Part shown: piece by piece, positions 1 through 24,026 of the stretch
Numbering within the stretch: the stretch's first letter is position 1
Layout of the letters: the number at the start of each line of letters is the position of its first letter
Assembly: GCA_977016875.1 (NCBI GenBank)
Contig: CDRNST010000088.1
Coordinates: 2,852,001-2,916,000 of the forward strand
From: Pavona decussata
Taxonomy: Eukaryota
DNA length: 64,000 bases
Direction of reading: 5' to 3'
Made by a program: the position numbers and the translations under genes
Notes under the pieces: generated by a model
Database searches by the model: none
Seen by the model: the letters and a program-made list of their open reading frames with translations, nothing else
Told to the model about the DNA's origin: nothing

Positions 1-931
1 TGAGATTCAGGTGAGTTGTCAGTGGTTGTTCATACCTGTTCTTTCTGATGATGGGTGGCAGAGAAGTGGGCAGGGGGGGGGGGGGGGGTTGACTGTTTTC
101 AATAGCACAAAATTCGAAAGAAATATTTAAGAAAGTGTTACGGCCTGATTGCATGAGCCGCCCTGGCCTGGTTAGCAAAACGGTCCATTAGTAATTCAAT
201 CTTTCCTTTTCTGTACAATGCATAAAGGTCTAGCAGACAGTCAAGGTTTATAAAACTTCAAAATAATGCACCAAAACGCTGGTTTATAATCCCTTAACGC
301 ATTTTTGTATGTGTTTTTGGAGTTATTTTCAAAACAACTGGTTCTAAAGTTAGCCGTTATTGGGCTGACCTGCCTCATGTAATACTGTTAGCGTGTAAAA
401 CCAAGCCAGCCTGGCTATCTAATCAGACCCTTAGTGTGGACAATGGCAATAATGAAATGATTTGATTGTAACAGCAAATGATGTACAGGCCTTGAAAGAG
501 GCGTTCCCAATTAAAGACAAAGAAGTTGTCCAGGCTCTTGCAAGTGCTGTGGGGTCAAGAAATTAAGCTGCGGAGTAACCTTTACCAGCAGGGTTGAGCA
601 GTGAAGTCACTGATCAAATTAGTAGGTATGTGCAGTACATAATCCAAAAGGGGAAAGGGAGGGGAATTGTTGCACCACATCTACAAGAAATGGAAAAAAT
701 AGGCAGTCTCAGACTGCATGTGTCTACTGCAGTTATGGTATAGAAATGTGATATAAAAGAATTGAAGAAAAGGGAAATAAGACTGAAATGAAAACGAAGA
801 GGGAGGAGTGGAAATAGGATAGAGATAAAAAAAATGGTTGTAAAAATATTGCACAGAATACTGGTGAGATTGAGATTAAGCTGGTATCGTTTACCACAAA
901 CATTTTGTAAGAAGAGAACTGTAACTTTTTA

Positions 932-1758
932 CACGGAATGCCCGCAGGGCATGACGTGTCTAGGTTTCGGTCGGGTATCTTTTTCTTCATCGGTGTCATA
1001 AATGTGCACATTAATTTATGCATTAAACTCTGTCCTCCCCTAGTAAGGATATATTGTTCTGTTTGTCTTCAACAGAAGCGGCCCAATCAAAATCTATTTT
1101 TCAGGCACATATCACGAGAGAGGGGACCCACTCATCACTTCTGTGTGACGTCAAATCATCATTTGATTTATTCATTAAAACTAGATTAAATTCTTCCCTC
1201 TCCCAGAAGGGATCTATTGTTTTGATTGTCTTGAACAAAAGCGGCCCAATCAAACTCCATTATCTGCGCGTATATCACGAGGGAGGGGACCCACTCATCT
1301 CTACTTGTGTGACGTCAAAGCAAATCATCATTTGGAAAAGTTGTTTTCGTTCAATGGCGGCCACATGTCTGAATTTAAGACTCCGGATCTGCCGTTTTCA
1401 GAGAGAAAACCAACCTTTTTCAAGCAGTAAATCGAAATAATAACTTCTAGGTAGTACTCGACAGTTGAAACGGCGGAAATTGGGAGAGTTCACAGCAAAG
1501 AAAATCTGCTTTAAAAAACAGATCGAATGATCAACGCGAAGGATTAGAGCTAGAGTAGGCCAGACCAGTTCAGCGGGGTCATGACGTTATTGCATAGTTA
1601 TTTCTGGTATGATTCCTAGTAACACAACGATAAGTATCACGCAATATATCTGAATAAAACCATTCAGACAATTATTTCAATGGCCAAGGGAGGATATTTT
1701 TTAAATATCTGCGAAACATACAATGGGGAATAATTTGGGCTACATTAAGCATTCCGTG
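932..1758. mobile_element. Non-autonomous CMC-type (CACTA/Mirage/Chapaev-like) DNA element
   Basis: Perfect 10-bp TIR CACGGAATGC (932-941) / GCATTCCGTG (1749-1758), flanked by TA on both sides (2-bp TSD). Contains an internal imperfect direct repeat (~1068-1165 vs ~1231-1333). Confidence 0.6.
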
Positions 1759-2668
1759 TAATGCCATTAGAGGGGCATCTTGTTTCTAACATAAACAATG
1801 TATTATATAATCTTACAACGTGAACCACAACTTTGTACTGAAAGCAATGCAGCAAAGTTCTAAACATAAAGTACTGAAAGCAAAGTTCTAACCTGAAACG
1901 TGGGCATAAAATGCAACGGAAACTATTAAATAAATTAATCTATACTGAACTTATGAATGGCAAGTAGCATTCTTTAACCCTTTGACTCCTGTCGTATTTC
2001 CATAGTTTTCGCATAAATTAACTTTTTCGTGCAGCGGTTCAAAATGCGCAGTAGGTAAATAAATATCGTTGGCTTCCAAAATTAACTGCATATTAAACTG
2101 GAATGATTAAACAAATGTTTTCTGACGTAAAATAATATCGTTACTATTAATCATTTGCCGAAAAACACACTTGAACGCAAAAATATCTAAAATTCACGGC
2201 ATATTGGTGAAGACCTTTGGCATATCAAATTTCAACCTTGATTACGCATTTGTCGCTTTTCAAACGCATATATGAATTGACAAAGACACAAAAATCAACA
2301 AAAAGCTTTTCCAACAAAACATTTTATTGAAATAAACGATGCATTTGCTATTAGAGGCCAAAACTTTCAGTTTTTTTTTTTGCGTGCGTGCAAACACGCA
2401 TGTAAAATTTGAAGACACTCCGTGTTTGTTCAAAGCGATCACTCGCAGTAAATTGGGGCACGTTTGCGATGAAAATTACAGAAGTTACAGAATTCTGGTT
2501 CAAATCATCACTTAAACTATTTGTAAAAAGCAAATCAACATCGGAAAACATCATTTACCGTATTGTCGCCATTGTCCTGATCCGCAAATACAATCGCTTA
2601 GATCTCGGTCAGTCGAGGATTAGCGTCAGCTTTCGATAGGATTCCATTTGGGATTCCTGTGGCATTTA

Positions 2669-2755
2669 CACTCTTACACTCTTTCACTCTTTCACTCTTT
2701 CACTCAACCCGATGACATAGTGTCTACGCTTCTCTAGAAGCCGTAGACACAAAAA
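2669..2755 (-). mobile_element. Helentron-associated (HINE/DINE-1-like) element 5' end
   Basis: Read on the minus strand: TTTTT, then inverted repeat GTGTCTACG...CGTAGACAC (2720-2750), then an 8-bp microsatellite (CACTCTTW)n at 2669-2705. No 3' end found. Confidence 0.4.
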
Positions 2756-3788
2756 CGAAGTGTAGTTCCACATATTTCTTCCAAAATAATGCAGTCATTT
2801 CCATGGCAAATTGTTCTTTCTTTCTTAAGCTTTAAAAACTTGCGTATTTATATAAGTTGTGCTAAACTCAGTTTACTTCTCTGTTTTGCTTGAGGAAACA
2901 GACGTCATTTCACTCTGCCAGTACTGGTTTTGCTGTATGGCCAATAAGGGTACTGCAAAACAAAAGTTAACATCTGCTTTCTTAAGCTTTCCTTTGTTGT
3001 GCTCAGGGAACAGTTTTATATAATTGGATGTTCTGAAGACATGCTAATGTGTGTGTAAAAGCTGAAGTGGATTTTCCTGGTATTTTTTTTACCTGAGGAC
3101 ATGATATGCAATACTGTTAATGATGATGTAAGCACTGGATATTATGTCTCCATGTCAAATTAGGGTTTTACTTTCTCTTACTTTCACAAGCAGGACTGGG
3201 ATGGAGTAAATGTCCGTAAAAGATAACACCATGCCAGGCCCTTGAGCCCACGGAATCGGCCACGAAAATCATCAGCGACTTGTTTTCAAAATGGCGGCCT
3301 GATTTGAATTACAAAAATTTAGCTAATTTATGACATAAATTTAAAAAGCTGAGATTTCTAGGAAGTTTGCAGGCCAGGCTGCAAATCACGAAGAAAGCGA
3401 AGCATGGTGGCTTTGTCGAGAATTAGTTTTGCCGCAGTTCAGGTGAGTTTTACTCGATTTTTAACCTATTTTTCCTTAGGATGTCGGGCCTACTCTATTG
3501 ACGTTTTATGTTCTTTCCTATAGAAATAAATTGTGATCTGGTCGTGGCAAACAAAATCAAAAACGGCAGAAACCTAGCGAGTAGCATGGAGGTCCCAAAA
3601 TGCTTAAAAATTCGTGTGAAACTTGGCTTTTTTCACCTAAAAAATGTACCCACGTTTCGGTGGTCAAGTCCCACTGGGACAGCCATTAAGTAGTCCATAG
3701 CCAACGAGGTCAATGTTTAACTCATTTTTTGTTGGTTGAACTGTAAGCTTTATATTTCATTTATTTTAAAGATTTCATCCTTTAAATA

Positions 3789-4342
3789 TATAACCTTATT
3801 TTATTTTGATTTATTTTCCCCTGATGCTTAATCCCCACTCCTAGTTTTCCAGGAAACCTAACCATTAATTGCTACCTGACTGCTTAATCGGAAGATCTTT
3901 AAAGTTGATTTTGAAAAGCATCTGAGAAATTATAGTGAATAAGTGAAACATACTGTTCATGAATTTACTATTGCACGAGTAGTTGATTTTTGAGAATCAT
4001 TTATGAAATTATAATGAAACATGCTGTTCATTAATTTAATAGTTCCTACTGTTAAACATCTCACTTATAACCTTATTTTATTTTGATTTATTTTCCCCTG
4101 ATGCTTAATCCACAATCCTAATTTTCCAGGAAACCTAACCATTAATTGCTATCTGACTGCTTAATCGGAAGATCTTTAAAGTTGATTTTGAAAAGCATCT
4201 GAGAAATTATAGTGAATAAGTGAAACATACTGTTCATGAATTTACTATTGCACGAGTAGTTGATTTTTGAAAATCATTTCTGAAATTATAATGAAACATG
4301 CTGTTCATTAATTTAATAGTTCCTACTGTTAAACATCTCACT
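3789..4342. repeat. Tandem duplication, 2 x 277 bp
   Basis: 3789-4065 and 4066-4342 are near-identical (tataaccttatttt...gttaaacatctcact). Confidence 0.95.
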
Positions 4343-5324
4343 CAAATGAGTTCTTCTTTTGATTTTAGGGTTATTGCCTTTCTAGTACTCTTGGCGTGTA
4401 AAGTCTATGTACTGAGCTGGTCAAGTGTGGCAGAATTTCATATTACTCATCGATTTTTTTTTTTACTTCACTTGAGAACAAGTACAAACTGCCACCAGCT
4501 GTAGCTGATGCTTTAGTTACATGCCCAGAAAGGGACGGAGCAAGAAAGCAATATCCAAGGCTTACTTTCCCATTGGACAGCACGCAAAAAACAAGAAGGA
4601 CTTGAGAGAAGTGTATTCGAAATTTCAAGAAACTCAAAGGAGGTTAAACTGTGTAAAAAAGGTGATTGTTAGAATCTCTCTTTAAACCACAGCCCTTTGC
4701 GTGCTTGTGTTATTGTCTTCCTGCTTTTCAGTGGTCTTCGGTCGCATGCGTAGCCGGCCTTCGCCTCTATATCTTGATATAAAAACTAAATAGAGCCTTG
4801 GTTGAGTTGAGATGGAGAGGATAAACGGCAGATTTGTTACCACAAGAGAAGATTCCCAATTTTGGTATTACCAAAAATGGCGGCGAACAAAGGGTGACGC
4901 ACGTAAAGGACTGTTGTTGAAAGACGCTCTTTAATCTTTATCCTTTGATCATGAATTGTGATTACATATCATGTGAAATACATTATTAAGAAGATTTTAA
5001 AATTTGATCATTGGGGTCTAAACCTTTTAAACCCCACTGGCCACCAAGACATGTTGGATGATGTTTGCTGATGTTAGTATATATGGTAATTTTTATTGTT
5101 CTTGCTCAAACTTACAAATAAATCATCAAGTTAAAACAATGGAAATCAGAACCGTGATGGTGGTTTCGGATATGTCATCTTAATTAGCATAATATGTTAT
5201 GTCTATTTCAGTAAGTTCATGGATAGAGCTGCCTTGAAAAAAGATCAACATAAAACTGCTGCTTCCAGAAGTTTTGTGTTAGCTAGATGAAGATTAATTT
5301 GGTGCTTTTTTTGTAAATGAATAG

Positions 5325-7624
5325 GTTAAGAGGGCAGAAGACCATATTGTAGTCAGTCAGGAAAAGTTAGATAGTTTACAAAGAAAAAGGAAGTCAGAAG
5401 ATAGTGAGCAGAGTTCAAAGGAACTAATTGCAAGAAAGAGGAAGAAGCTTAAAAGACAAAGAAGCAGTTCAAGGCTTCAGAAAGAAAACTCTGAACAATT
5501 TGAAGTACCCCAAGCAAAAAGGTCTGCTAGTAGAAGAAAGCAAGAGACTCTAGAAATATGTGGTGAATTGCATGGTGCAACTGATACTGATCAAAGTCCT
5601 GCCTTTGATGGCATGTGGGCTACATTGATAAATGCCAGTTCACCACTTAGGTTAGCTAGCTATATTTCACATTCTGCTAAGGCAAAAAAGAAGGTGTTAC
5701 CTATTGTAGTTAAGAAGGAGATCAATCAGTTTGAAAAAAGCAAAGATAACTTAAACAGAAGTATTAAGGTATTATATAGTGGGGGATTACTCAGTAAGGA
5801 GAAGTATAAATCCATCAGAACAAATTTGCCTATGACAAATAGCAGTACTGCAGTGAAAGGAAAATGCAGTATCAAAATTATGCCTAGTGTTTCCTTGCCA
5901 AAGTTGGTGCCTTATGATAAGCTGATAAACTACATTAAAACAATCGACTTCAATGAGAACATTATTGACATGGCTCCTGAATTTTGCTGGGGTTTACCTA
6001 ACAGTGAAGAAGTGAATGGAGCCTATCGGGAACTAGAGGAATTTGTTTTAAAACTTGCTGAAATGTTTATAGTGGTTGATCAAGCTCTTGGGTCAAAGTC
6101 ATTCTTTAACCACTTGGGAAGTGACAAATATCACTTTAAGCTTGCCATAGGGGCAGATGGGGCCCCTTTTGGCAAAGATGATGAGGCAACGGCATGGTTA
6201 ATTTCTTGTTTAAATGTGGCTAGCCACATTGCAAGTCCAAATCAAAATTTTCTTATTGCTGGTGCAAATTGTAGCGAAACTCATGTGTGCATGCAAAGGT
6301 ATGCTAGGAAATTAGTGAATGATATGAACAGCATGACAAGCAAAAGTTACAAAGTCATGGATTTTGATGTTAAGGTTCCGTTTGAACTTCTCCCCTCAGA
6401 CATGAAGTGGCTGGCATTCATGGGGGGAGAATTGTCCAATGCAGCATTTTACTTCTCCCCTTTTGGGAATGTTAATGATGACACAAAATCTACTGTCAAT
6501 GGGACCCTGGGTAAGGGTGGCCAAAACACTTGGCAGCCATGGCCTTATAACAAGCGCCTTGAGATAGCTGCAAAAGTTTCAAATTTAAAGCAGCAATTGC
6601 AGGAAAAAAACTATGCTAAGTCCACTAAACGAAAAAAAGGTGTTGGATTTTATCAGAAATCAGAAATCCAGGCAAGAGTTTGAGCCTCTCGTTGGTCCCC
6701 TGATTGATGTCGGTTATGCAGAACCTTTACACAATGGCAACAATGGATGGCAATTCTGGCACAGTTTGATTCTTGAGCTGGCTTTAGGCAAATCTCGTTT
6801 GCCTGGGGGTTGCAATGAGCTTGACAAATTGCCAGCTGATTCCCCTTTCATTTGTTATTTAAGTTGCCTTAGAAATAATTTTGGACTCACTCGCCTTGTA
6901 AAAAAGGTGAAAAAGTGGTTCACAGAGGGGAGGAAAAAATCTTTTGACTTCAGATTTACAGGCAAAGAGACAAAGAAAATGTGCCACAAGTTCATGCTCT
7001 TGCTTGACAGTGTTAGTAGGGAAAGTGACCCACCAGAAACCAAACTTAAGATAGCTACCTTGGCCTTCTGCGGCCTACAGCTTAAGAGATGCTGTATCCT
7101 TGTTTTCTAGGGTTGAAATTACAGGGAGCGAAGTAGCTAAACTAAGGATTGCTTGCCAGAATTTCTTTAATGCCAACTCTTTGCTCCTTCGAGTTTCCCC
7201 CACTGTTTGGACTATCGGGTACGCAATTCCATATCATGTCCAGATTCTGTATGAAAAATATGGTTTGGGCTTGGGCCTTAACAGCATGCAAGGGAGAGAA
7301 GCAAAGCATGTTAAGCTGAGTCAGTATGCAAAACATTCCACACTCTCTACACGTTGGAGACTAGTTCTCCGTCACGACTTTATAGTCTGTGTGTGGATGG
7401 GTAAAGAGGATCCACTTAATGTGTCTTATGTAAAAAGTAAGGAACACTGTATTCCACCTGAGATTAACTCTGAAGGGTTTTGCTACTGTGGGTTTCTCAA
7501 ACATGATGACGAGGAACTTTGTCAGTTCTGTTCCTCAAATCTCTACAAGGCAGTTAAGAATTCTGCAGAAACTGGGGTCTTGGCAAGAGAAATATGCAGT
7601 CTTGCTAGTGTGACAGCCTATTGA
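5325..7624 (+). pseudogene. RAG1/Transib/CMC-like DDE transposase, two frameshifts
   Basis: ORFs 5568-6683, 6613-7110 and 7100-7624 join into one protein; the frame is open from the splice acceptor at ~5324. Motifs in RAG1-core order: LAIGADG (D, 6156), ELLPSDMK (D, 6399), AEPLH, GLGLNSMQGREAKH (E, 7298). Basic NLS-like N-terminus; C-terminal CYC...CxxC. Confidence 0.7.
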
Positions 7625-7952
7625 GACTTTTTTAATCATGGATTCGCCATGCCACCCACAGTGACTTGGTAGCTTAAGGTAAATTTGTTCTAGTTTCCAC
7701 TGTTACTTCTTGAAGAAAACAAGGTTTAAATAATATATTAACATATTGTGATAGTTAATTTACTAATCTGGTGCCTGCTGTTCAGTGTTGCTTGGCATTT
7801 GTAGAAATTTCCCTCCTGCAATTTGTGGCACTATTATTGTTGCAACAATATTGTTATAAACGTTCAAAGGTTTCATCTGTTACAGGTAGTTCAGTGGAAT
7901 AAACTTTGACAATTTAACTGGGACTTGTATTTGTATATTATTTTAACTCTCA

Positions 7953-8370
7953 AACCCTTTAACTCTCACTCCCAGGATCTGATTACAAATTCTCCCTTGT
8001 AGCTGCTATTTATTTTACTGTACATTAGTTAAGGAATGTGGGGTTCTCAAGATTATGCCTTCTGGCTGATAAGTTTATCTATTCTCATCACCTGCCTACT
8101 GGACAATGTATGGACATTGTGAGGAGAAGTTACATGGTAATCACTAGATCTTGGAGTTATGTCTCGAACAATTCCAAGCGCGATCATCCCCCACTCCCCA
8201 GGCATTTGTTGGGCATTTGTCTTTTGATTTCCCCCCCCCCCTCCCCGCCCCGGGCTGACCTTAGGGAAATGCCCCACTGTGGGGAAAGAGAAGTGACAAA
8301 ATGCCCGACAAATGCCTGGGGGTGTGGGGTGCATGGGCTTAGGATCGATCAAGCCATTAGTTAAAGGGCT
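7953..8370. mobile_element. MITE (AACCCTTTAACT...AGTTAAAGGG) with a nested MITE at ~8158-8359
   Basis: Terminal inverted sequences present; the right TIR is split by a second element ttatgtctcgaacaattcc...ggatcgatcaagccatta. Confidence 0.6.
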
Positions 8371-8497
8371 ATTATCCTTTACAACCTAGCATCAATAAAG
8401 ACCCTTAATGGCCTTATTTAACACTTACAAACTCTAGAGCTGAACAGGTTAAATGCATTCACAACATAGTTAATTTCTCGTGTTGCTTTGCTTTCAG

Positions 8498-9117
8498 TTA
8501 AACAAGTGTGCGCTGAGGGATGCCATTCCTGTTGAAGTAACCATATCTTGCCTTAAAAGTAATTTTTTCTAAGGTCTTAGAGTAGTGGAAATAAGCTGGG
8601 TGGTCTTCCTCAACAATGATTGTGCTGTACGAGCCATCCTTTTCCTTCCTAACGAGCACATCAGCTACAGGTAGCGACGGCTTGTACTTGTTTGCAAGTG
8701 AAGTAAATAAATGGCGAAATTTGTCACGATTTGTGATCTGTAATTCTACAACACATCGAGTATTCTTGACGACAGCTCCGCCATTTTCTTGCATAACATA
8801 CAACATTTTAAGGTCTCGAATATTTCCTGAGGCAAATTCCAGGTGAAAGACACTGTGCATGGACGAGAAGCACTTGTTTTCTTCTTCATTCTCCGTAAGG
8901 TGATTTTGTGCCAGTGAACCACCGTACGGGACAACATTCTCGCCGGCTGGGAAAGGTGATATTTGAACGCTTTTTCTCCAGGCAAGGTATGCTTTTTGAT
9001 TACCGCCCTGGTCAGCTGCAACAGTTCATCACTAATTTCTATGGCCAAAGACTGATCATCAGCCGTATCGATGTAATTTTTCACGAGCTCGTGAACACTG
9101 ACGATAAGCTTCGCCAT
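8498..9117 (-). pseudogene. Orphan ~205-aa protein with one frameshift, convergent with the RAG1-like gene
   Basis: ORFs 8746-9117 and 8498-8860 overlap in different frames; the ATG sits in AAAATGGCG context. No recognisable domain. Confidence 0.5.
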
Positions 9118-9512
9118 TTTGAATTTGAACCACGCAGGCGCCTATTTCGCGTGGTAGCCGATTGTGGCTAGCCAGGAGCCCGCCATGCACATTATAACTC
9201 AGCACGTTGTAACACTGCCCAAATATGGCCATGGTGCACTCAATATCTGTCTTACATAGTCAACAGATATCCTGCAATATACGTAGTTTTGTGCGCCGGG
9301 AGAAAAATGACAAAATAAAGATTGTCTCTAGCTTTTTCTGCAATAAAGCTGTGCTTTGTTATCAGTGTCTTGAATAACAGAACAATTATCCTGCTCAATA
9401 TTGGCTGAATTTAGCTAATCTGCATCAGTCCGTGCCGGGTAAGTGTTAGGAGATATTCCACACGATTTTACAGGATAATTGTGTAATATTTATACCACTG
9501 TTTGCTTCTTTT

Positions 9513-10415
9513 TCAAAGCCTTGATGATATCTTGAGTGTCCTCGTAAGAAAAGTTAATCAGGAGGAATGGATTGATCGTCCCATTAACAGAAACGATATC
9601 TTGCCAAATGGCATCAGGCGGCTAAGAATTAAGAAGTAAGATGGTCTTTTGAAGATCCACTTCTTCGGGGATAATGGGGTAGACACCAGAGGCCTGCAGA
9701 AGGAGTTTTTATCCGGTAATGATTAATTTTTTCAGTAAACGGTTTGAACCCAGCACTATCTGTAGTTTGTTTAGTTTGATCATCCGGGTGAATGTAATTT
9801 TTAAAAGTAATGTTGTTGCTGACAATGAGTGATGTTTCATCAATCTTGAGCGGTAGCCATCTTCAGAGTCATTTTGCGGTGTTTATATCTCTAGTGGTAG
9901 TGTAATGTTATGGCTATGAAAACTCAATCTGACTATTGTTATTCATGTATTTTAAATAAAGGAATGGTAGTAATTCACAGTGTACCTTCATTTTCATAAT
10001 TGCTGGTTGTATTCTCATTTGTTTGCCTACCAGGTTATCAAAGCCTCAGCCAAATATATTCCTGTCCAGTCTTCCCACTCAATCAATACCTGTTGATGCT
10101 CCTAAACAGTATGTCTCCCCACAAATAATGTTAGAAAGGTATAAAGATATTACAAGTTTATTTCCCCATAAGTACATGTTTTAATTTATTAATTGCGGAC
10201 AGCATTTATTGTGGCAGCTCAGCCCACATTGTTTGAGGGCTGTTGAGCCTGTCGAGGATGGCTAATTTACAGTAAATGGGCAGCTGATGATCGTGTCTGT
10301 TCTCCAAGAGGGTCCACCACCAGCCTTTTTAGCTGAGTGGGTGACCACGTATTTGTGCACCACTCATGTCGCAGAAATCAAACTGACAGATGATATTATA
10401 AATCCAGACATAAAG
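9513..10415 (+). pseudogene. HECT E3 ubiquitin ligase (G2E3-like) remnant, spliced
   Basis: Exon ending at ~9715 encodes LKIHFFGDNGVDTRGLQKEFL (HECT F.GE.G.D.GG..REF motif) followed by a GT donor. Exon at ~10203-10415 encodes GQLMIVSVLQEGPPPAFLAEWV. Contains stops and is truncated at ~10416. Confidence 0.65.
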
Positions 10416-11475
10416 TGTTGCAGCCAAATTCTTCATGGTTTTTAGTATTTCCTTTCAAGTTTTAGAGTTTCTTTGACTTAGATAATTCTTAGTTCATGTG
10501 GTTAGGACAACAGAGATACGGCATATGGAACAAAGAAATGTATTATCTTTTGTATTAGGTAGTTTTTCTCACTACGTGTTTAGGAAAAACACCAGTTCTA
10601 GTCTACGAGTCACCGCACTTACGTCAAGCTTGTAACGTCTACCTTTTTGAGTCTAAGATCCCTCAAGTGGACACAGATGTAAGTTTTATACCTTTTTTGT
10701 ATCTAGTTTCTACTTTCGTATCAGCAATTGTTAACTTTCATTTCTATAGTTTGTAATACTAGTTTCTAGTAAGTCTTGTACTTGTTCCTTAGTTACATCG
10801 GATTAAGTCACTCCTACGTATGTTTCCTGAAGTTAGTGATAGTGTCATACTTAGTCCAACTATAGTTTTTATTTCGGTATTTCTTAGTTTTCTAAACTGC
10901 TTTGCCTTACAAACCCTTCAAATACAACTGCTTCAACGTTAAAATCGCTTCACTAGTAACTCTTCATTAACGTCGCTTGGTAATGGTTCAATAAAGGCTG
11001 TTTTATTAGACTTTGTCGCAACCATTGTTGTGGTGAACTTCAAAGTGCGTAATGAATTTCTGTGTTGATGCTGTAATGATAATGTGTTGGAATGAAAACA
11101 TCCCATAGATCTTTATGGACCAAAAGCCAGGAAGGAATCAACTTTAGTTCTCCTACAGAGGCTTATGGGATTTAAATGTGACATCGTTGACGGATTGCCT
11201 TCGAAAATATATGTCGGCCTTCCTATCACAAGATCCTCAAGTTTAAGACATTCACTGAAATGTTTGAAAGGTCCACAGCGCAACAAAAATCAGTAATTCG
11301 ATTTAGGCGCTGCAAAAGTGAAGGAGACAGCCATGACCAGGTAGTGACAGCCTGAACTTTCCAAGTTCTTCACAACTGAGTTTGGATTTTTGTTCAGTAG
11401 TCGGGCTGGAACGAGGTTGGATTTCCTTTTCACGTGTTTAGGTAATTTCGTCTGTCGATGGAGGGTCCATCATAG

Positions 11476-13153
11476 ATGCAACAGCGTAAAGTTAGCAGTC
11501 CTATTAACATGCTCCAACATCTCTTAGTATCAGGTGACACGCTGAAGATCATCCAGCACGAAACAAAACAAGATGTAATCATGCAAGAGCTGGAGGCTAT
11601 CATCAAGAATGGTTGGCCCGACAACCGAAACAAAGTTCCAGAAAATCTGAGGGACTGCTATTTCTCTCGTGATCAGCTAAGCCTACAGAACGGCCTGATC
11701 TTTAAAGGTGAACACCTTGTCGTGTTGGGTGGTGCAAAAGACTACATAAGGTCTAGAGTACACTCTAGTCACATCGGAATTCAGGGATGTCTACGCCACG
11801 CTAGAGAGTCAGTCTACTGGCCGGGTATGAACAGCAACATGAAGGAGTTCATTTCCAAGTGTCCCACCTGCAATGCCCACCAAGCCGGCCAACCCAAAGA
11901 ACCTATGATCTGCCATGAGATCCCCTCAAGACCATGGGAGAAGATCGCTTGTGAGCTCTTCGAACTTAACAAAAGGGATTATCTAATCATGGCAGACTAC
12001 TGCTCAAGTTCCTTCGAAATTGACTGCCTGCACAACAAAACTGCAAAAGAAATCATCTCTAAGCTAAAGGTTCATTTGTCAAGACACTGTTTGCCTCACC
12101 AGCTCATATCCGACAATGGACCTCCCTTCAATGCATTTGCGTTTGCAGACTTTGCGCATGCTTACAACTTTGAGCGCATCACTAGCCAGGTTACCCTCAG
12201 TCAAATGGCAAGATTGAAAACGCTGTCAAGACTGCAAAGGACCTCATGACAAAAGCTGGAGTCAAGACCCGCATCTGGCGCTGTTAGACTGGCGCAATAC
12301 GCCAACTGAGGGCCTTGGAAGCTCTCTGGCACAGCGTCTCTTTAGACGAAGGACGCGAACCCTACTGCCGACATCAACCACGTTGTAAAACCCAAAAATA
12401 CCAACAGAGGTTCCCCAGAACCTAATGAAACAGAAGGCCAAACAAGCCATGTATTACAACCACGGTACAAAAGAGCTAAATGACCTTCGCATTCGGGGTG
12501 TCGTTCGTATAAAACCCCTATGACCTGGCGAAGGAAAACAGGGGTGGAGAAAAGCCAGAGTTGAGAGCAAAGCAGACATTCATTCATACAAGGTTTGACA
12601 GAAGATGGGAGAGAGTACTGATGAAACAGGCGGCACTTAAGGCAGACCCAAGAAGATGCACAAGTGGACGGTCAGGAGCAGAACCTCACCCCAGGGCCTC
12701 CACCAACAGCAAGGAGCGAGACTCCGGATGCAGCTCTTTTGCCCAACATTGAGCCCCTGCAAGAGCCCATAGCACAACACTCACCACTTCAAGAGCCACC
12801 AGCAGCTGGACCGAGGGAGAATGCGTCCACTCCTCTCACTCGGACGAGTGGTAGCATTGTGAGTCCACCAGTGCACTTGAAGGACTATATCACTGGCTAG
12901 AAGTTTATATACCTAGCTACCCAACACGGGCTTGTCATTTTCGTATCTAGCTTCACTTGGACAGAGACATGCATGATTTAGTTTTCAATTTTTTTTGGTT
13001 TTGTTTTGGTCGTTTACCCCTGAGAAGGGAGGATGTGACGTTGTTTGACTTCCGGTCATAGGATAGCTCACAGCGTGTGACCTAGATTTCTCGGGTTATA
13101 TTGCTCAATCTTGAAACAACTCAGCTTTGTGAAGTAAAGCACACTTTTCAGAT
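11476..13153 (+). mobile_element. Ty3/Gypsy retrotransposon 3' part (integrase, PPT, start of 3' LTR)
   Basis: Integrase zinc finger H-SH-G...YWPGM...CPTC, plus LISDNGPPF. PPT GAGAAGGGAGGA precedes TG at 13034. The LTR is interrupted at ~13154. Confidence 0.9.
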
Positions 13154-22628: not shown

Positions 22629-23180
22629 GTGTTGCCTTTGGGCATGTACTTGCAAGAAGGTGACATGTTTGTCTGTGGAACTGCTCGAGCTAACAAAAAG
22701 CTGAATGAGCGAAGAGCCTCTAGAATGGGACCACAGAAAAGCAGGGAAATTAAAAGCTCCGGTGGGATTATTGCTTTGGCATGGAAGGCCAACAAGCTTG
22801 TCTATTTTCTGTCTACCATCCATCCACTCTCCAGATCAAGTGTCAACAATTCAGTGGCACCAGATGCTTAGGGCAGGTGGATACCAGTTAGTTGACGTGC
22901 ATGCACATTATTATAGACAACTATAATGCTCACATGGGGGAATTGCCAGGAACGACCAAATGACATTCAACAAACAAATGCTCTGGTATATGCTATTAGT
23001 TATACGGTTCTTAGAAGCTGCAGCTTTCAATGCATACATAAATGAAGGCTTTTTGTGGACCATAAAAGAGACCTTGCATTTAGTAAGGAACTGATTCGAC
23101 AGCTGGTGGGAAATTGGAAGACAGAAAAAGGAAAATCTGGAAGGAGACAATCAGAACCTATAAGACTTGACATTGTCTGT
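22629..23180 (+). pseudogene. piggyBac transposase C-terminal fragment
   Basis: MFVCGTARANKK, IIALAWKANKLVYFLSTIH and YNAHMGGI-RNDQ (canonical YN..MGGVD..DQ). Confidence 0.75.
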
Positions 23181-23191
23181 CTTTTGATCTT

Positions 23192-24026
23192 GTGCGATCA
23201 GACATGAAATGGGCGTCCACCTTTAGTGGAGAGCTACCTAACTCTGCTTACTATTTTTCCCCCTTTGGGCATGTGAGTGACGACAAAAGTACTTTAGGTA
23301 CATCTCCAGATTGCATGTGGAAACCCTGGCTTTACGAAGAAAGGCTTAAGACAGCAGCTAAGGTACAAACAAAGAGAAGGGAAGTGGAACAAACAAACCT
23401 AGCTGCATCTACTAAGAGAAATAAACTGTTAAATTACATCAGGGATTTTAAATCCAGGCAGGAATACCCCCCCATTTTAGGTCCATTGATAGATAACATT
23501 TACGCTGAGCCATTACATAATGGTAACAACGCTTGGCAACAGTTACATGCACATATTCTTGCCCATAGCAATGGTAAAAGTTCCATTCCAAGTTCATGCA
23601 CTGATCCATTTGAATTTCCAGAATGTGCATTAGGTTTGCATTTGGCCATCCTGAAAACAATTGGGGCAACTCGTTTGTACAAGAAAGTAAAGAAGTGGTG
23701 TGCCCGAGGGCGAAAAGGAAATCTTTCCTATCGTTTTACTGGCAAAGAGACAAAAATCATGTGTCACAAAGTTATGCATCTGTTGCAAGCCATTTCTTTT
23801 CCAAATGATACCCCAGTACAACAGCTGCAGATCTGTAACTTTGCATTTATTGGCTTACAGCTGAGGGATGCAATTAGCAGATTTAGTCGTGTCCCTGTGA
23901 CCCAGGGAGAAGTACAAGACCTCCGGGAATATTGCAGGAAGTATTTGACAGCGTCAAGCCTTCTTCTAGATTCAGTCACACCCCCAGTGTGGACCATAGG
24001 TCAAGCAATTCCATTCCATACTTATA
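23192..24026 (+). pseudogene. Second RAG1/Transib/CMC-like transposase fragment (distinct family member)
   Basis: Colinear with 6396-7236: SDMKW, GEL.N.A.YFSPFG, YAEPLHNGNN, FTGKETK.MCHK, VWTIG.AIP.H. Cut by a MITE before the catalytic E. Confidence 0.8.

Follow-up and report, generated by a model that had tools for sequence, protein, structure and literature searches.

The stretch of DNA analysed here, called the window throughout, comprises 64,000 nucleotides of Pavona decussata (assembly GCA_977016875.1, contig CDRNST010000088.1, positions 2,852,001 to 2,916,000 of the forward strand). Near its left end lie two convergent pseudogenes, a plus-strand gene for a DDE transposase and a minus-strand gene for a small protein that we call ORF2, with a HECT-like remnant to their right (Table 1). 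An initial annotation had joined all three into one large transposon that started at an 8-bp motif and carried a ubiquitin ligase as cargo; the two convergent genes and the motif proved real, whereas the proposed limits and terminus and the HECT cargo were not borne out. With good confidence, we read window 3230-9187 as one copy, now dead, of an autonomous cut-and-paste DNA transposon with two convergent genes, one for a DDE transposase with a RAG1 fold and one for a DUF8238 protein; the element probably belongs to a separate lineage of the CMCT clade of transposons. The copy is dead in that both tips are mutated, the transposase gene carries two frameshifts and the ORF2 gene carries one.

Table 1 Features of the element and its flanks, in window coordinates (a slash marks a splice point)
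Feature	Position	Strand	Basis
Left target-site duplication, CAC	3227..3229	.	single CAC in the empty C98 paralogue
Left terminal inverted repeat, ~45 bp, imperfect	3230..3275	+	C8 alignment begins exactly at 3230
Probable 5' intron, GT..AG	3443..4368	+	CAG/GTGAGT and TTTTAG/GG at the sites
277-bp tandem duplication, two units, inside the probable 5' intron	3789..4342	.	self-matches 3789-4065 / 4066-4342, 97-98%
Putative first coding exon (MPRKGRSKK...VKK), followed by GTGATT	4521..4661	+	open reading frame with donor-like site
Main transposase exon, pseudogene	5325..7624	+	relatives with intact open reading frames; indels relative to the C8 copy and population contigs
ORF2, convergent accessory gene, ~206-207 aa, pseudogene	8498..9117	-	intact in the C8 copy; relatives are DUF8238
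Right terminal inverted repeat	9143..9187	-	C8 alignment stops at 9187; C98 paralogue resumes at 9188
Right target-site duplication, CAC	9188..9190	.	junction reading
Host flank with HECT-like pseudogene remnant, outside the element	9188..10052	+	continuous with window 2761-3229 in the C98 paralogue

Ends, extent and copies of the element

A DNA search of the eukaryotic genome (602 Mb in 1,180 contigs) with window 2500-11500 as the query gave two decisive matches, on contigs C8 and C98, both then examined by BLAST alignment and visual inspection. The C8 match is another copy of the element, 98% identical over exactly window 3230-9187 and set in unrelated flanks. Contig C98 holds an empty paralogous site, where the match to the left flank (C98:248952-249427 with window 2761-3229, 92%) runs directly into the match to the right flank (C98:249427-250301 with window 9188-10052, 90%). 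The junctions read ..taaCAC/CATGCCAGG...CCCGCCATG/CACatta.. in the window and ..gtaGTA/CACGCCAGG...CCCGCCGTG/GTAagg.. in C8, whereas the empty site reads ..ttaaCACatataa.., with a single CAC in place of the CAC found on each side in the window. The junctions in the window, C8 and C98 thus define an element of 5,958 bp, window 3230-9187, with tips that were originally CACG...CGTG. Both window tips now read CATG, decayed from CACG by a CpG-type change, while the original form CACGCC...GGCGTG is found in all undecayed copies; the C8 copy reads CACGCCAGGCCC at its left end. The left and right ends align with a score of 27, whereas shuffled sequences average -17 and reach at most 18, and within the window the pattern CAYGSCRGGC occurs at 3230 and 9187 only.

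These ends differ from those proposed initially. The element was thought to start at 3249, but the C8 alignment and the empty C98 site both place its start at 3230. The 8-bp motif that had suggested 3249, CACGGAAT, does occur at 3249-3256 and 932-939, and once more on the minus strand, at 1751-1758 (five matches in the window against 1.15 expected). At 3249, however, it is 19 bp in from the start of the left repeat and is not the terminus. Nor is it a terminal inverted repeat shared with an element at 932-1758, as that repeat is unrelated and high-copy, with copies aligning over ~926/929-1785. The right end, formerly held not to be visible, is located at 9187 by the inverted repeat and the CAC duplication.

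Six insertions in all show a 3-bp target duplication: CAC in the window, GTA in C8 and, for related elements with CACGCCGGG...CCCGGCGTG tips, GAA on C104, ATT and TTT on C214/C245 and ATA in another coral assembly. The window and C8 copies are separated by 77 substitutions and 12 indels (~1.3%). Inverted repeats, target duplication, empty site, copies with different flanks and a DDE transposase together identify an autonomous terminal-inverted-repeat DNA transposon, and the ends, the duplications, the empty site and the conserved gene pair described below uphold the original idea of a multi-gene element with CAC tips. The locus could alternatively be seen as a segmental duplication, with ORF2 as a neighbouring host gene, given that the whole-genome DNA search found two full-length copies of the window subfamily only. 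We regard this as practically untenable. The similarity breaks off precisely at the inverted repeats, either copy is flanked by a 3-bp duplication of its own, and an empty site exists; moreover, ORF2 sits between the repeats, its start codon 70 bp from the right tip, and keeps its linkage to the transposase across subfamilies and phyla.

In other samples, both of this organism and of related ones, contigs stop at the tips, at window 3233 and 9184, with other flanks beyond. Their ends (..TCTAT/CACG.., ..CGTG/ATACAAA.. and ..CGTG/GTTGAG..) represent further insertion sites with undecayed tips.

Further motifs lie just inside the ends. The sequence TTCAAAATGGCG occurs at both, at window 3285-3297 on the left, 56 bp in from the tip, and at 9111-9123 on the right, 65 bp in from the tip. 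The C138/C104 subfamily likewise has a subterminal inverted repeat of 183 nt that covers the 5' part of the ORF2 coding sequence. The A-rich blocks ACGAAAATC and TTCAAAATGGCG, 33-68 bp from the tips, raised the idea of ends built like recombination signal sequences (RSS), with heptamer, spacer and nonamer. This was unsupported, and we rejected it because the position and orientation of the A-rich block vary between subfamilies.

The transposase and its DUF8238 partner

The plus-strand DDE gene called in the initial annotation was borne out by its D/D/E triad and RAG1-type fold. In the window, the catalytic codons lie at 6156-6158 (D), 6399-6401 (D) and 7298-7300 (E), and a C-terminal CxC...CxxC motif follows at ~7481-7531. 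Two 1-bp insertions, at ~6632 and ~7084, break the frame into three pieces; the C8 gene carries a different 1-bp insertion, at ~5733. The main exon has no start codon and is directly preceded by an ..aatag acceptor at 5324, so that the exon at 4521-4661 may be spliced to 5325, judging from the splice-site motifs. This putative 4662-5324 splice is unconfirmed, because contigs from the sequencing runs, whose nature as RNA is only a guess, retain that stretch. Further upstream, one contig of run X1, again only guessed to be RNA, joins 3440 to 4367, which with the cut shifted by +2 is a GT..AG joint 3442/4369 and suggests a 5' intron. The 277-bp tandem duplication within that intron is present in both the window and the C8 copy.

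Naturally intact paralogues (L003, L007, L010, L013, L018 and L043) stood in for the broken window genes. The genome holds at least 67 relatives of the transposase, with intact open reading frames of 701-744 aa, and we estimate the full length at ~730-790 aa. In an alignment of 24 sequences, the triad D247, D330 and E628 is invariant, as are C687/C689/C700/C703, which form the C-terminal CxC...CxxC, and L439-H440, which form an LH motif. No conserved cysteine was found in this alignment between D330 and C579, meaning that the C(2)C motif is absent; of the H(3-4)H pair only the second histidine, H607, is invariant, and the first 190 residues contain no conserved cysteine column. The nearest protein relatives come from stony corals, and the family, which at E <= 0.001 comprises no fewer than 3,265 clusters (50% identity), reaches amphioxus and a nemertean. 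All database relatives are labelled 'hypothetical'. Pfam searches with the three fragments of the window transposase and the two of the window ORF2, each searched separately, gave no match. Another fragment of the family lies at window 23177-23440, with 49% amino acid identity to query residues 270-362, and the amphioxus relatives P0268, P0282 and P0266 have two C-terminal additions, a C2H2 finger and a SAP domain.

The AlphaFold (AF2) model of the transposase has a mean predicted local distance difference test score (pLDDT) of 89 and a predicted template modelling score (pTM) of 0.82. It places D247 on strand 1, D330 after strand 4 and E628 on a late helix, the canonical positions of an RNase H fold. 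RAG1, BbRAGL and HzTransib account for all of the 49 best matches in a Foldseek search of the PDB, with E values as low as 1e-12. Comparison with solved structures gave scores of 23.5 for RAG1 (residues 460-1005, 475 aligned), 20.5 for BbRAGL and 18.9 for HzTransib, followed by 12.4 for the P element transposase, 7.4 for ISCth4 and ~6 for Hermes. The predicted model thus shows a RAG1/Transib-core fold that spans the dimerisation/DNA-binding module, the pre-RNase H and RNase H parts, the helical insertion and the C-terminal domain. In an atlas of predicted structures the neighbours were RAG1, Transib-like and Transposase_21 (CMC) clusters, about equal at template modelling (TM) scores of 0.56-0.58.

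The second gene, ORF2, is split in the window by a 1-bp deletion at ~8790, a single frameshift that leaves two overlapping minus-strand frames; the C8 copy retains a single intact frame of 206 aa (L013:2087-2704). Its relatives fall into 35 clusters, nearly all of ~207 aa, which carry the Pfam annotation DUF8238 (PF26709). The ORF2 start codon lies within the right-end TTCAAAATGGCG, the motif mirrored at the left end, and the promoter must therefore be sought within the final 70 bp or beyond the element. The protein is basic (isoelectric point 9.6). It is modelled, at pLDDT 80.5, as three long helices and, after them, a small alpha/beta domain. Because this model contains no propeller, ORF2 is not RAG2-like. 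A search of PDB sequences with the ORF2 profile returned chance rows only.

The linkage of the two genes is widespread. ORF2 stands tail-to-tail with the transposase at no fewer than 17 loci in the genome, and it remains convergent in a subfamily with 48% transposase identity (C138, C104, C273) and in subfamilies with 36-39% identity. In the latter, the local ORF2 of 205 aa matches the window-type ORF2 by hhalign with a probability of 95.6% (E 1.3e-8). Beyond this genome, the pair is found in two other coral assemblies, and a convergent DUF8238 gene lies beside the transposase in the nemertean Lineus longissimus (L050). At the amphioxus locus L049, no relative of ORF2 was found with the A2 profile, and a lone upstream CACGCCAGG is at chance level. 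The convergent orphan gene of the initial annotation accordingly belongs to the element, and we show that DUF8238, a family without assigned function, is the second gene of a transposon. Because the linkage is strict and ancient, transposition may need ORF2 or be regulated by it. A predicted complex of the transposase with ORF2, made without alignments, scored 0.00 and is evidence neither way.

The HECT-like flank and neighbouring repeats

To the right of the element, a plus-strand HECT-like stretch begins at ~9520 and reads ..KIHFFGDNGVDTRGLQKEFL.., with an in-frame stop at 9637-9639. Its reading as HECT is backed solely by a language-model lead, which points to G2E3-like HECT clusters: exon-by-exon Pfam searches gave no match in the window or in the better-preserved C98 paralogue, and a genome-wide scan with PF00632 (HECT) did not list the window locus. 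The three genes lie side by side and each shows decay, which would suit a single element of ~7.2 kb (3249-10415 or longer) that had carried a HECT ubiquitin ligase as cargo and lost its right end. We consider that model extremely unlikely. The C8 copy stops at the equivalent of window 9187 with unrelated flanks; a matching inverted repeat and a CAC duplication are found at 9187/9188; on C98, what lies to the left of 3230 is joined directly to what lies to the right of 9187, an empty site that refutes the model; and other family members, at the loci inspected, have no adjoining HECT sequence. Since the HECT-like sequence is continuous across the empty site, it is not cargo; since it also lies wholly beyond the ends, the element landed in or next to it. 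What remains of the original HECT call is a plus-strand HECT-like remnant in the host flank. Likewise, a comparison of gene order and shared ends across copies, as first suggested, found the transposase-orphan pair conserved between CACGCC...GGCGTG ends with a 3-bp duplication, but neither the HECT linkage nor the 3249 start.

Several repeats surround the locus. The repeat at window 926-1785 (~857 bp) has at least 40 scored copies at 98-99% identity (2,459 candidates at first look) and is sometimes tandem; 932-1758 are not its bounds, because copy alignments extend ~27 bp beyond the supposed right terminal repeat at 1751-1758. Window 2500-2760 contains a repeat of ~256 bp with 30 or more copies at 95-100% identity, which is absent from the C98 flank paralogue. 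On the other side lie repeats at 10396-11063 (84-87%) and 11061-11500 (~91%), and the open reading frame after them, up to 12249, matches Integrase_H2C2 (E 1e-10) and probably belongs to a long terminal repeat retrotransposon.

Probable placement in the CMCT clade

The CMCT clade comprises EnSpm, Mirage, Chapaev, Transib and others, with CA..TG tips and 2-5 bp duplications (Kojima 2025, PMC12730594), and its motifs are C(2)C and H(3-4)H (PMC12730594; for the CMC motifs also PMC4079192). Chapaev has CAC..GTG tips and 3-4 bp duplications (PMC4079192) and an N-terminal cysteine-rich 'Chapa' domain, with or without a RING (PMC4411706), and is described as a single-gene element (PMC4079192, PMC4411706). 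Transib and the RAG-like transposons (RAGL) make a 5-bp duplication, and in RAGL the RAG1L gene is paired convergently with a kelch RAG2L gene (PMC7204232).

The family could be a true member of Transib/RAGL, its transposase a RAG1L and its partner a divergent RAG2L. Among solved structures, the best matches over the whole core are RAG1, BbRAGL and Transib, the tips begin with CAC as in RAGL and Transib, RAGL too has a convergent second gene (PMC7204232), and, as in RAG1, a zinc-finger-like tail extends beyond the catalytic E. Membership is nevertheless very improbable. The target duplication is 3 bp in all six insertions, not 5 bp; sequence identity is ~10%, and none of the 24 members matches Pfam RAG1; the tip CACGCCR shares with the RSS heptamer (CACAGTG / CACTATG) the CAC alone; the ZnC2 cysteines are missing, and the tail is CxC...CxxC instead of Cx2Cx3GHx4C; and the partner is a helical plus alpha/beta DUF8238 protein of 207 aa, not a kelch propeller. 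The parallel drawn initially with ProtoRAG is therefore one of architecture only, and the kelch partner and 5-bp duplication have no counterpart here. The same genome contains a single weak RAG1-Pfam fragment (C11:1220833-1221096).

By its DNA hallmarks, the family falls on the CMC (EnSpm/Chapaev) side of the clade rather than with RAG/Transib. The 5'-CAC...GTG-3' tips and the 3-bp duplication are hallmarks of Chapaev and EnSpm, the latter within the 2-4 bp (mostly 3-bp) rule of CMC elements. The LH motif is shared as well, the Transposase_21 cluster is a structural neighbour (TM 0.56), and the hhalign match to CMC transposases, though weak, is collinear over D1, D2 and the LH motif. The hosts, namely cnidarians, amphioxus and a nemertean, also overlap the range reported for Chapaev (PMC4411706). 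All this would suit an ordinary, already catalogued Chapaev or EnSpm family, an explanation that we consider unlikely but take seriously. In contrast to such families, the new one lacks C(2)C, has no Chapa or RING domain at the N-terminus (no zinc-finger/RING Pfam match) and gives no match to Transposase_21, whereas 63 canonical CMC loci of the same genome do match (open frames of 780-998 aa, e.g. C93:5733060 and C225:1410352). It also differs in having a convergent second gene, DUF8238, where Chapaev is described with one gene (PMC4079192, PMC4411706); none of the papers searched mentions DUF8238. With neither a C(2)C zinc motif nor a Pfam signature, the family is probably a separate, unnamed lineage. 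The initial annotation, which spoke of an unnamed RAG1/CMC-related lineage, was in the right neighbourhood on this point and wrong in adding ubiquitin-ligase cargo to it.

Several observations count against our reading of a separate CMCT lineage with a two-protein machinery. C(2)C is present in all described CMCT lineages and absent here. At the sequence level, alignment with 10 CMC transposases of the same genome by hhalign is weak (probability 2.7%, E 0.017), the 24 family members match no Pfam family, including RAG1 (PF12940) and Transposase_21, even at E 10, and the transposase profile returned chance rows only from PDB sequences. The ORF2 fold is unrecognised, with nothing beyond generic helical hairpins among solved folds, and the subunit role is proposed for it from the linkage of the two genes. 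Finally, the family may already have a name in Repbase or Dfam.

If our reading of an autonomous two-gene element is right, the transposase would cut at the CAC tips, probably by nicking followed by hairpin formation on the flanking DNA, by analogy with RAG1/Transib, and integration would proceed with a 3-bp stagger. En/Spm also requires two element-encoded proteins. In this family, ORF2 may be an accessory subunit or a regulatory one, with a role like that of RAG2 in RAG-like transposons or of TnpA in En/Spm but a different ancestry.

More tentatively, we propose as a possibility that the family is a separate, unnamed CMCT lineage spread across Cnidaria, Nemertea and Cephalochordata, which has dispensed with the C2H2 zinc site and works as a two-protein machine with a tail-to-tail DUF8238 subunit, an independent parallel to RAG1-RAG2. 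If true, this parallel would be found in the very animal phyla where RAG-like transposons occur. The window copy itself is ordinary, being dead, placed in a HECT-like pseudogene and without cargo capture; the interest lies in the family behind it. At least 3,265 'hypothetical' clusters and a Pfam domain of unknown function gain an annotation, as RAG1-fold transposases and their obligate companion gene. For the origins of RAG, the family would offer a comparison point for the recruitment of a second subunit, the role of the zinc site and the determinant of the integration stagger.

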